In this document: in pieces, positions 33,862 to 48,800 of the stretch
Position numbering within the stretch: position 1 is the first letter of the stretch
Layout: the number at the start of each line of letters is the position of its first letter
DNA from: Paragordius varius
Taxonomy: Eukaryota; Animalia; Nematomorpha
Assembly: GCA_964247055.1 (NCBI GenBank)
Contig: OZ176051.1
Span: forward strand, 13,144,001 to 13,208,000
Length of the DNA: 64,000 bases
Direction: 5' to 3'
Notes under the pieces: model-generated
Database searches by the model: none
Told to the model about the DNA's origin: nothing
The model's input: only the letters and a program-made list of their open reading frames with translations
Translations under genes and position numbers: made by a program

Positions 33862-36800
33862 GTAATTGTAATTTAGATTATTTTAGAAAAAATTAAATCT
33901 TTTCTTACTACATTTTATATTGATGGAAGTGCTGGAAAAAATTATAAATATGCCGATGAATTGGTTTTGTTGATCTTATATTATAGACTAAAATAGCACA
34001 TAGAGAACAGGCTTCCCTGAAAATAGATTTGTGGGATGTGGAAGATTTTGACTTGGATTTATATTCAGCTATAATTAACAATGCTAAACGCTATGTAACG
34101 CTTTTTAGTGATTGTGTCAACGATTTATTACCAAATTACAAGCTCTACGAGGTTTCATATTGATATTTATTAATAAATATTTATATATGTAATAATGTTT
34201 TTCATTTTAGCCAGATGTTAGGGATCTTTTGGATGTGTATATCCATCACAGACTTTTGCTCGAACAACGTCAACAAAATCAGAATCGTGAAGCTAACAGT
34301 GAGGACCTATCTTCCTTGCAAAAGAGATATCCCGCTGAATTAACCCGTCGATTGTATAACTTACAATTTTTATTTGCTATATTTCCTTTTTAAGCATATT
34401 ATATAAAATCATAAAATTATTAGGGATTGACTATGAATAAGTTTTTTGAATGACATTTTAAGCGCATTTTAATTTTTTTTCAAAAAAATATAATTAAAAA
34501 TAGTTTTTGTCTAAAATATAAAATATTGGTAACGTTTTAATGAAAGCTAATTAATACAATAAAAACTAAAAACTTTCGGGCTCACTAATAAAATGGCCTT
34601 TTATCGCATTATTGAAAACAAGTCTACCTCATAATTGAAAATGCTTTTATGATCAAAAAAATAATCATTTAAAAGCCAACTTTCCAGAACAACTCCTATT
34701 TCAATCGTACTTTAAATTTTTTTAATCAATGATTACGAGAATATAACAACATATTTAATTGTAAATTTAGAAGAAATAATTTTAACACAATCTTAATTTT
34801 TATTATGAATTTAAATATCTGGTTTCATTATTTAGACGAAACTATTAAAATAATTACATTTTTTACTTTCACTATACAAAATTTATACAGATTACTAACT
34901 AACATTACTTTATATAACAAATACAGTCATGTATGTTTAGAATTGTCAAACATACGTTATTAATTGATTTTACTTTGTTTTTAATTGTTGACAATAAATG
35001 GCTATTATCATTTTAAGGCTTAAAAAGTCGCATGTTGAAAGTAGTTGACATATCAAATATCATAACAATTAAAAACAAAGAAAAATCAATTAAAAACGTA
35101 TGTTTGACAATTCTAAATATACATGACTCTAAGTTGCCACTATAAAACAAACGACACATCTTGTTTTTATTTACATATTATAATTGGCACAGTGAAATAA
35201 CTTTTGAACTCCACAATAATGATGATGGTAATGATTCAAGCGTTAATAATCAATCCAAGCCCTTAGCCCTACGTCAACTTAAAGCGTGTCACATTGGGAA
35301 ATTGGTTTGTGTTACTGGTCAAATTGTACGAAGTACGGAAGTCAAACCACTTATACAAGTGGCAACTTACACGTGTGATTTGTGTGGCGCTGAAACATAT
35401 CAACCGGTGTGTAGTCCTTTTATATATATATATATATATATACAGTAACGTATGGAGAGTAAAACAATATTAGTATCCATAAAAGAATAAAAAAAATGTT
35501 TTTTTTTCAAAAAAAATACAATCCTAAATGTAAATACATATATCAAAAATATCCCCTTGTTTTTTTAAGAAAAAAAAAGCAATTTTTTATTCAATTATGG
35601 ACTAATATTGTTTTACTCCATACGCTACTATATATATATATACCATTTACAAATTCCCTCTTGAACAATTCAAATTCACCCTTGAACAATTCAAATTCAC
35701 CCTAAAAATAAATTATGTTTTGAACTAATATAACTCATTATTAATATGAAATATATGTTTATGGTATAGTTTATTACTTTTTCAGTATTATTTGAATATT
35801 TTTTAAAAATATATAAAATATAGGTAATTTTTAATCTTAAAAAACATATATTTTATTTGAGGGCAAATTTGAATTTTTCGAGGGTGAATTTGAATAGTTC
35901 AAGGGTGAATTCGAATTGTTTTAAGTGAAATTAAATTGTAAATTTTATATATATATATATATATATATATATATTTAGACTGAAATTATACGGACAAAAC
36001 GTAATAAAGACAAATATTTTTCTCTAAATACAACTATACTTTTTAAAATCTTGATTTATATATCAATATGACTCATTGTTTTAAATGGGGCAAAGTATGA
36101 AATGGAAATATATATTACTAACACAATCAGTTCTATATTTTATAATTGTAATTAAATAGCTTATATGAGAAAAATTAATGTAAGTTGTGTGGAGCCGAAA
36201 CATATTAACAGGTGTGTAGTCCTTATATATATATATATATATATATATATATATATATATATACGGAAAAAACGTAATAAAGTTTTTTCTCTAAAATACA
36301 ACTATACTTTTTAAAATCTTGATTTATTTCAATATTACTCATAGTTTTAAATGAGGCAAAGTGTGAAATCGAAATATATATATTATTAACACAATCAGTT
36401 CTATATTTTATAATTGTAATTAAATAGCTTATATGAGAAAAATTAAGGTTTAAAAAGTATGGCTGTCTTTAAGATAAAAATATTTGTTTTGTCCGTATAA
36501 TTTCAAATTTTACTGTATATGTATATAGAGCAGGACAGAATGAGATTTGGCGGTATACATTATATAGTCAAAGGCTAATACAATCATATTGGTTTACAAA
36601 TATTGATATTTTTACGAAAATTTAATGTTTTAGCTTATTAGAAATATATTGGTCCAGTAACTTACTCAAATATTTTATAATTGTAATCATCAAGGTTGTA
36701 TTGAAAAAATAAAGTGTCAAAAATAAATATTAGTCTTTTATTTTTATTTTTTTTACAGTAATTTATTTTTAAGTTTGTGGATGAAAATTTACTTTTATTG

Positions 36801-45800: not shown

Positions 45801-48800
45801 GGCCCACGGGCCCCATGCCGTCTTCCAAAGGTGCTTTTTATGCCCTTGAATTATTTAAAATTTTTTAATGTATTTATGAGTGAAAACATTCTGGAAATGT
45901 GTTAACATCTATAAATTTTTTGTTATTATATGGTACACGGCCCTTGAGATAAAAAAAATATTTTTTGCGGCCCTTAATATTTTTTTTGGTAAGTACCACT
46001 GTCTTTAAATATACATGTGCGTGCGAATGAAAAATGTAAACTGCAATTTAACATATATACTATGCTCTATTTTTTTTAATTTTCACTTCCAATTAATCTG
46101 TTTTAGGGAGAGTTTGATACCCTATTTTAGATCATGAATTTGTTTAAAATAACGAAATGTAAAAAAAAACTTTTTTGATTACTTTCATTGTAGGCGGGTA
46201 TAAATACAACGTTGAATGCACGCACATCCATTCTGGCTGCAGCGAATCCCTTGTATGGAAGGTATAACCCAAGGAAATCTATAACACATAATATTCAACT
46301 CCCGGCTGCCCTGTTATCTCGTTTCGATATTCTTTGGTTAATTCGTGATTTAGCTGAAAATGATGCGGATTTAAAGTATGAACGAAAGATATATAATGTA
46401 TTAAATTTTGGAAAAAATATGCTCTTTCTAGTGTTAGAATATATATTTTTTATGAGATTTTCAACTTTTTAGAGGCTAGTTTAACTTAAGGCAGCTATGT
46501 TTTTACAAATTACCTTCATAATCTAGGCAATATATATTTAATTATATACCTGAGCTATACTACAATAGTAGTACTTATATATCGATTTAGTTGACAAATG
46601 ATTCAGATTTACATTGTTTGTTCATTGTGTATTATATCAGTACCCTCTTTATTGATCAATTTTTTGGTCAACTGGAAACACAGTAACATATAATTAAAAA
46701 TAAATTTTAGCCATAATAATTAAATAAACATATAAGATAAAAAAAATTAATCATTTATTGTTTTTTCCCATACCCTACTGTACGGTCAAACTGGTAATTG
46801 ATTAACAATTTATATATATACATATTAATTAAGACACATAAACATTTTTTACTATTTAATTGTAGGCATTAATTTTTATGTTTTTTATTTTGGAATTTTT
46901 TTCAATACAAACCTTTGCGTTATTGCATTTAGATTGGCGCATCACATAACACACGTTCATCAGCACACAGCGCAACCTGAATTATCATTTAAACCGATGG
47001 ATATGAATTTTATTCGGTATACTAATCTAAATTATGTAATTAATTTTACAAGTTAAAAAAGTAAAAGCAAAAAAGTTCTGCCAGCGTTTAATAATCTAAA
47101 TATTGTGTTCTACAATTATAACACCAAAAATTAAGCAATTAACTTACATCCATATGAATGTTAAAAAATAGTGGTCATGATAACTTTTCCTTCTATTATC
47201 CTATATTTATATCGCTAAAAACATTAATAAAATAATTTAGTGAACATGTCCCTTATAAAATGAATATATATTTATTTTTGTTTTGTAATGTTTAAAGTTT
47301 TTGTTTCCTTAATATTTTATCACATATATTGCGCACAGTGTTATATTACTCAAATAAATTAATTTTTTGATTTTTTTATAGGTATATTATGAAAACATAC
47401 CATTTTAGGATTTTAACGTAATTAATATGGGAAAATTTTATTTTTTACGCGTACCATAAATGCATTTTTATAAAGATGCTTTATATCGTAAATATGTGGG
47501 AAAATATCAGATTTTCATTGAATATCAATAGCTGATGCTTATTATAACCAATGGTAGGTTTGGTAAAATGTTTTAGAAAAAAACTTTTATAATGAAATTT
47601 AATATTACGTTAATTTAAGTTTATTTTTGGGGTATGTTTGTATATATATATATATATATATATATATATATATATATATATATATATAAAATATACAGAT
47701 AAACAATCAAATTCCTTAAATATAGAACAAAAATATGGTTTTCCCTATTTATATAAAAAATCCATTAGTCTTTACATTTTTACGGTTATAATACACCTAT
47801 TTACATATCTTACGTATTGATTAGACGCTACATAATTCTTTGCCAAAGTAAGAATCCTGTTATACCAGAATCCCTAAATGAATATATCACTAACGCCTAT
47901 GTTGAGTTACGAAAACATGCGCGGGCTAATACAGACACTAGTACTTTTACATCGGCTCGAACACTCTTAGCCATTCTCAGAATGTCTACTGCATTGGTAA
48001 ATATCTTATTATAAATTCATTTTATTTAAACATAATAGATTAAATTTGGTGGTGTAAAAAGTTGTGAAAAGGTCTTATTCATGCTTTTTAGCAAGAATGC
48101 TCAACGTAGAAAAGGGTGAAAATAGTGCTAGAAAATGACTTTGGAAGCCAATATCATAGCTGTTTACTGTATATATATAATAATTTGATATCAACTTTGT
48201 GTCTTTCTATTGTTAATTGACTTTTAAGTCTTCGACGTTTGCATAGAAAAATGGTGTCATGATTGAGCTAACTTCTTGATCTCCCATGCTTGTTTAATAT
48301 GCGTAATTTAAGTTCAATATGCCGATTAAAAATTTCACTATTTTTAATATTAAAAAGGCTCGGTTGAGATTAGGGGATACGGTTTGCAAGGAAGACGTGC
48401 TTGAAGCTTTACGATTAATCGAAAAATCCAAGGATTCTCTCAATACTGCCCCATTGACAACTAATAAGTATATCCATACCTATATATCATTGAGTAATCA
48501 TTATATTAGGAATGAAATCAAAACTTTTTTGGGGTTATAAAATAAAAAACCCTGCCTTTAAACCGGAAACACGGTTTTTCATGGTTACAATTTTTTTAAA
48601 TCGTAATTTTGTTTATTTTGGTGTCTGTTTTATTTAAATTGACCAAAGTAGACAGACACATTGCATTTATGGTTTTAAGTATGGTTTTCAAAATAAAATG
48701 GAACCGAAAAAAGTAGCATATATTTATTTTAAAAATAATGATCATGTACAATTTTTTTCTGTTTCTAAGTTAATATTTATTATCCGATAAATGCTATTAA

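Follow-up and report, generated by a model that had tools for sequence, protein, structure and literature searches.

We describe here the 5′ splice sites (donors) of the hairworm Paragordius varius, as seen in the MCM7 gene within a 64,000-nucleotide stretch of its genome (contig C2, 13144001-13208000; referred to below as the window) and in nine further conserved genes. The assembly comprises 110.6 Mb in 44 contigs, and the GC content of the window ranges from 22 to 38%, mostly lying between 23 and 29%. A preliminary description of the window had noted that its donors prefer T at +4 and mostly lack G at +5, and had suggested a shift of the donor code away from GTRAGT, with altered recognition by the U6 small nuclear RNA (snRNA) and possible loss of METTL16 and SNRNP27K. 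To place the MCM7 introns, homologues were collected with one exon as query (window 45250-45459), and ten full-length sequences were aligned to the window by a spliced protein-to-genome dynamic programme that allowed only GT or GC paired with AG and used no splice-site weights. The gene and its 15 donors, in window coordinates, are as follows.

33828..49082, plus strand: MCM7 gene, about 17 exons, with the ATG at 33828 and the stop ending at 49082, from spliced alignment of the 10 homologues
33862..33867, plus strand: donor GTAATT of a 25-nt intron (33862-33886) that joins 11 residues to EKIKSF in frame
33964..33969, plus strand: donor GTTTTG (T at +3) of a 23-nt intron (33964-33986), 7/10 homologues
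34152..34157, plus strand: donor GTTTCA (T at +3), 10/10 homologues
34354..34359, plus strand: donor GTATAA, 7/10 homologues, the alternative being GTCGAT at 34347
35407..35412, plus strand: donor GTGTGT, 10/10 homologues
37809..37814, plus strand: donor GTATTT, 10/10 homologues
39656..39661, plus strand: donor GTATAA, 8/10 homologues
43136..43141, plus strand: donor GTAATT after a poorly conserved exon (43044-43135), 4/10 homologues, the rest missing the exon
44193..44198, plus strand: donor GTTTAA (T at +3), 10/10 homologues
44543..44548, plus strand: donor GTAAAA, 10/10 homologues
45460..45465, plus strand: donor GTGTGT, 10/10 homologues
46376..46381, plus strand: donor GTATGA, 10/10 homologues
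47017..47022, plus strand: donor GTATAC, 9/10 homologues
47997..48002, plus strand: donor GTAAAT, 10/10 homologues
48468..48473, plus strand: donor GTATAT, 6/10 homologues, with alternatives GTAATC at 48494 and GTTATA at 48534

These are the same 15 MCM7 donors that had been listed before, and the counts given for them hold: T at +4 in 11 and A in 4, G at +5 in three of 15 (GTGTGT twice and GTATGA), and GTRAG in none. Twelve are picked by at least seven of the ten homologues. The weaker three are those at 33862, where the short first exon is reached by just one homologue, at 43136 and at 48468, and their alternatives likewise lack G at +5. Three other donors counted in the preliminary description, one in a G protein-coupled receptor (GPCR) gene and two in a supposed ankyrin gene, could not be located in the window; no ankyrin gene was seen, and the open reading frames (ORFs) at 53.4-56.1 kb of the window encode a galactosyltransferase instead.

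A wider sample was drawn from eight CCT genes and HSP60, located by PF00118 on four further contigs, which contributed 65 introns. Their exon ORFs were scanned with subunit-specific NCBIfam models, giving tight model coordinates for each exon, and the candidates for each junction were all in-frame, stop-free GT..AG pairs whose count of added residues differs by at most two from the gap in model coordinates. For 51 junctions there was a sole GT..AG solution, with a residue count equal to the model gap, and for 14 more a single pair of exact count together with an off-count alternative; five junctions, four of them ambiguous and one with no solution, were excluded. The bases at +3 to +6 did not enter into the selection. 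Placing the junctions by generic PF00118 coordinates had given unique solutions for only 12 of 46, because the match ends are ragged, and was replaced by the subunit models. Also excluded were several short CCT-theta exons and one each from CCT-alpha, CCT-eta and CCT-zeta, which show coding potential and no match to a hidden Markov model (HMM); about 200 exon matches to PF00012, PF00063, PF00225 and PF00071 were not used in the donor sample, and spliced protein models served for frame checks only. With MCM7 the pooled sample holds 80 introns from 10 conserved genes on five contigs, and only GT-AG introns were considered.

Four RNA-type sequencing runs under the same species label were compared with the CCT-epsilon gene and yielded a single piece of 50 nt, 88% alike, and no joints. 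No RNA data thus matched this genome, and every junction used here is one placed by homology. The piece in question (locus L054, 4113-4162; C1:14863013-14863062) suggests that the label and the assembly may differ in species; according to a 2026 preprint, hairworm RNA-seq data include mislabelled species (10.64898/2026.02.03.703548).

Position by position, the 80 donors carry little information beyond the exon end and the first bases of the intron. At −2, 64% have A, and at −1, 66% have G and 25% A; at +3 there is A in 64%, T in 30% and G in 5%. Only 12 of 80 (15%, confidence interval (CI) 9-24%) have G at +5, a frequency no higher than that of G in intron interiors (11%, p=0.29), and hence there is no G signal at this position. 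The shortage of +5 G first seen in MCM7 is therefore general across the 10 genes, and it lies far from what is usual in animals. At +4 the majority is T (55% against 36% A, a ratio of 44:29), as had been proposed; its specificity to that position was not supported, as T makes up 61, 55, 58 and 55% of +6 to +9 respectively, and the share of T among A and T at +4 (60%) is close to the 53% of the intron background (p=0.24). T is thus raised equally at +4 and in the bases that follow, which points to a run of U and not to a preference at +4. MCM7, at 11:4, lies at the T-rich end, the remaining genes having 33 T to 25 A. At no position from +3 to +10 does the relative entropy exceed 0.27 bit.

The contrast in composition between exons and introns is sharp, with 41% GC in the former and 22% in the latter, intron interiors consisting of 37% A, 42% T, 11% G and 10% C. 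By class, //GURAG donors number 3 of 80 (3.8%, CI 1.3-10.5%) and AG//GU donors 31 (39%), leaving 46 (57%) that belong to neither. T at +3 is associated with an AG at the exon end, found in 15 of 24 such donors against 14 of 51 (Fisher p=0.005). A stricter subset of 63 introns is alike, with 11% G at +5 and 29% T at +3. Among introns of at least 300 nt, 39 of 53 contain an internal GT whose score equals or exceeds that of the true donor, so that the motif alone cannot define the sites. The acceptors show a short U-rich tract followed by AG (TAG in 56, CAG in 14 and AAG in 10 of the 80).

Intron length varies widely in the sample. Introns of 23-36 nt, needed to keep the frame, share genes with introns of 0.2-3.4 kb; five of the 80 introns are at most 36 nt long and 14 are shorter than 100 nt. 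The shortest lie at 33862-33886 and 33964-33986 of the window, at about 1066-1091 of L056 (the CCT-delta locus), in L058 (minus strand) and at about 1123-1158 of L062. In CCT-eta (L059/L060), five of the six resolved donors read GTTTTT.

The snRNAs that read donors look ordinary, contrary to the proposal of altered U6 recognition. There are two identical U6 genes (114 bits), which carry GAUACAGAGAAGAUUAGC and have the canonical ACAGAGA box within UACAGAGAA. Four U5 genes (83-91 bits) have the loop 1 sequence GCCUUUUACU, and two canonical U1 genes (L008, L010) have the 5′ end ACUUACCUG. Two more complete U1 genes are C9U variants with the 5′ end ACUUACUUG and stem-loop sequences of their own, unlike those of the canonical copies. 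They lie at

C6:606254-606419, plus strand: U1 C9U variant (L009)
C6:3718553-3718717, minus strand: U1 C9U variant (L011)

and each of the four U1 genes is preceded, about 30 nt upstream, by a TATA-like box. A dozen other U1 copies (L012-L019), at C6:565000-634000 and C6:3727000-3735000, are decayed, with AT-rich sequence in place of roughly the first 20 bases.

Both proteins suggested to be lost were found. A genome search with PF05971 (Methyltransf_10) matched only one locus (G000:C7:1673955-1675223, minus strand), where an uninterrupted ORF of 530 residues (L003:685-2277, minus strand; PF05971 E 1.1e-40) retains the catalytic NPPF motif of METTL16 (FTMCNPPFY, FTMCNPPFYSLEQ), which lines up with its counterpart in chain 8gu3_A. 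Among distinct PDB sequences, the top seven for this ORF are all METTL16-type chains (E 2e-30 to 1e-21); six bear the name U6 snRNA (adenine-(43)-N(6))-methyltransferase (8gu3, 6du4, 6b91, 6gfn, 6gfk and 9u47), and the seventh, 2h00, that of methyltransferase 10 domain containing protein. Psilocybin synthase ranks behind these chains, and the bacterial RlmF model also matches the ORF, below its cut-off. The alignment to solved relatives consists of three blocks, placed around an insertion of some 160 residues. An ORF of 308 residues with strong coding potential lies 57 nt downstream (L004:472-1395, minus strand) and could be joined to the first in frame through a 93-nt GTATTT..TAG intron, giving a product of 827 residues; it had no match in Pfam, PDB or Atlas, and its single-sequence AlphaFold2 model reached a predicted local distance difference test score (pLDDT) of 37.

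For SNRNP27K, a search with PF08648 (the C-terminal SNRNP27 domain) identified two exons, C8:387670-387792 and C8:390796-390846, which span HMM positions 2-40 and 39-55 with 46.7 and 35.6 bits respectively. The sequence of the last exon is RQYMNRKGGFNKPLDFIA and then a stop, and it keeps the methionine equivalent to human Met141, a position tied to the choice of base at +4 (PMC10581693). N-terminal exons were not found within 1.5 kb upstream. As judged from the genes in the assembly, loss of METTL16 or SNRNP27K and change in the snRNAs are excluded as causes of the unusual donors. Since all of these components are kept, neither the excess of U at +4 nor the lack of G at +5 marks the loss of a system for N6-methyladenosine (m6A) in U6.

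Other explanations can be weighed with these results in hand. METTL16 might have been kept for another substrate, such as S-adenosylmethionine (SAM)-synthetase mRNA, with U6 left unmethylated and the bare A43 favouring U at +4. Such a loss of function would fit the insertion, which follows NPPF within the methyltransferase domain, the KA-1/VCR domain that could not be shown, the downstream ORF unmatched in Pfam, PDB and Atlas, and the excess of T over A at +4. We nevertheless consider it unlikely: the domain is conserved in its N- and C-terminal parts as well as in the catalytic motif, U6 retains the UACAGAGAA target and the +4 bias is indistinguishable from background (p=0.24), while the loss of +5 G and the 30% of donors with U at +3 would be left unexplained.

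Specialised snRNAs, either the C9U form of U1 or other variants, could alternatively be the main readers of the odd donors. The two complete variant genes with ACUUACUUG and their own stem-loops (L009, L011) and the 25% of exons that end in A speak for this possibility, which we nonetheless hold to be quite unlikely. The C9U change touches only −1, and in both types of U1 the bases pairing with +3 to +6 are unchanged; neither U6 nor U5 shows a variant, and allowing for C9U raises the mean number of matches in the U1 pairing region only from 5.2 to 5.4 of 9.

It is very unlikely, in our view, that the pattern is an artefact, with homology-based junction calls or a small housekeeping sample misrepresenting ordinary donors. 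Such an account could draw on the lack of RNA support and the restriction to GT-AG pairs, on the second candidate within two residues in 14 of the 65 CCT/HSP60 calls, and on the three weakly supported MCM7 donors. Against it, 51 junctions have a sole in-frame, stop-free solution that matches the gap in a subunit-specific HMM, the strict subset agrees with the whole (+5 G 11%, +3 T 29%), and not only were +3 to +6 unused in the choice but the alternative candidates lack +5 G as well.

The idea that METTL16, SNRNP27K or both have been lost, leaving A43 of U6 unmethylated and donors changed to U at +4 in the manner of budding yeasts, has in its favour the ratio of 44 T to 29 A and the Saccharomycotina, where losses of these genes accompany +4 U (PMC10581693), but is scarcely credible given that METTL16 (with NPPF) and SNRNP27K (C-terminal domain and Met141) are both present and look intact, that +4 T is no higher than the adjoining U-run, and that the +5 G kept in yeast GUAUGU is lost here.

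To the extent that homology can tell, the donors are genuinely odd, and they depart further from the norm than the preliminary description had stated; the proposed shift of the donor code away from GTRAGT finds support in the 80 introns placed by homology, which come from 10 genes and five contigs. We think it probable that a canonical spliceosome in this animal reads a 5′ splice site that has become degenerate, the GURAG class having been eroded by AT drift and other cues helping in recognition. In the sample, donor information is limited to A at −2, G at −1, the GU and +3, where A or U stands and G is very rare, and from +4 on the start of the intron is just U-rich, with no preference for G at +5. 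A strong AT-biased drift may have worn away the //GURAG donors, which pair with the ACAGA of U6, and the choice of site would then rest on other cues. One candidate is the exon-end AG, which could pair with U1 and with loop 1 of U5 and is enriched exactly where +3 is U; the run of U past the donor and the sharp difference in composition between exon and intron may be others, and the C9U variant of U1 may assist exons that end in A.

Several points count against a degenerate site read in this way. The recognition cues are all ones that we infer. The flavour of the donors depends on the gene, all six CCT-eta donors beginning GTT and eight of ten in CCT-delta having A at +4. The junctions have no RNA support, being placed by homology and as GT-AG only, and the sample consists of 10 conserved housekeeping genes and not of the whole genome. 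Finally, the KA-1/VCR domain of METTL16 could not be shown by Pfam, PDB, Atlas or the structure model of the downstream ORF; this domain binds the U6 internal stem-loop, and it aids the specificity of METTL16 for U6 (PMC10581693).

Taken further, and more tentatively, an intron-rich animal might have nearly abandoned the pairing of its intron starts with the U6 ACAGA box and with the U1 bases for +4 to +6 while keeping canonical U1, U5 and U6, METTL16 and SNRNP27K, its donors being set by GU, A or U at +3, the exon-end AG, the downstream U-run and the contrast in composition. If true, the animal would be a natural counter-example in which the sequence preference of donors is uncoupled from whether the U6 m6A system is present. 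No visible change in the snRNAs, METTL16 or SNRNP27K goes with the donor shift. Should RNA data confirm it, the animal, in which introns span 23 nt to more than 3 kb within single genes, would offer a test of how far the metazoan spliceosome needs pairing on the intron side, and of the role retained by METTL16 when donors no longer favour +4 A. At a practical level, gene predictors trained on GTRAGT would then misplace exon ends in this lineage.

The window holds three further features of note.

16885-17934, minus strand: GPCR
19232-22813, plus strand: long terminal repeat (LTR) retroelement, frame-broken, with gag zinc knuckle, aspartyl protease, reverse transcriptase, RNase H and integrase-like ORFs
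53451-56134, plus strand: three overlapping ORFs (189, 277 and 467 residues) in different frames, the last with galactosyltransferase domain PF01762

Inverted repeats resembling miniature inverted-repeat transposable elements (MITEs), with arms that read LELFKDQLE... and FKLVLEQF... in translation, occur in many introns and intergenic stretches, for instance at window positions 39210-39430, 43640-44010, 57345-58195 and 3347-4074 and at L005:1030-1257.

The closest precedent for a +4 U majority is in the Saccharomycotina, where a switch from A to U at +4 has been linked to METTL16 and SNRNP27K having been lost (Parker et al., eLife 2023, PMC10581693). Current models tie the +4 preference to the m6A that METTL16 makes in U6. 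As in those yeasts, U exceeds A at +4 in the hairworm, and neither U1 nor U6 shows a compensating change. Unlike them, it keeps METTL16 with NPPF and SNRNP27K with Met141, it has lost +5 G and the +3 purine, its genome is intron-rich and its donors are not an invariant GUAUGU. The likeness to yeast GUAUGU drawn in the preliminary description fails on this account: with +5 G down to the background (15%) and the +3 purine lost, the pattern is not of the GUAUGU type. The METTL16 association study describes only limited variation at −1, +3 and +5 (PMC10581693), and the present case differs in kind, as +3 and +5, which barely vary in that study, are the positions changed here.

A different comparison is offered by Zygosaccharomyces and Eremothecium, which have a complete METTL16 despite a strong +4 U (PMC10581693). 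The hairworm is like them in keeping METTL16 alongside a +4 U majority, and the association of METTL16 with +4 is thus not absolute. It differs in that those yeasts are intron-poor with a strong, fixed consensus, whereas here the consensus is nearly absent past +3 and the excess of U at +4 does not rise above the local U-richness.

Among animals, Caenorhabditis elegans has donors of the form AG|GUAAGUUU, with majorities of A at +4 and G at +5. The hairworm resembles it in the U-run past the donor and in acceptors with a short U-rich tract ending in AG, and departs from it in that neither majority is kept. In C. elegans, METT-10 methylates U6 (PMC11347140).

Current models of animal donors recognise two approximately equal classes, one leaning on U5 loop 1 (AG//GUNNN) and one on the U6 ACAGA (NN//GURAG), and in human //GURAG makes up 53.6%, AG//GU 45.1% and neither about 1% (Parker, Fica and Simpson 2025, PMC11732430). 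The hairworm fits this scheme in its AG//GU class (39%) and in the compensation between exon and intron, U at +3, present in almost one third of donors, going with an exon-end AG (p=0.005). It departs from human in that the U6-leaning //GURAG class is nearly absent, at 4% against about 54%, and in that donors of neither class make up 57% against about 1%.

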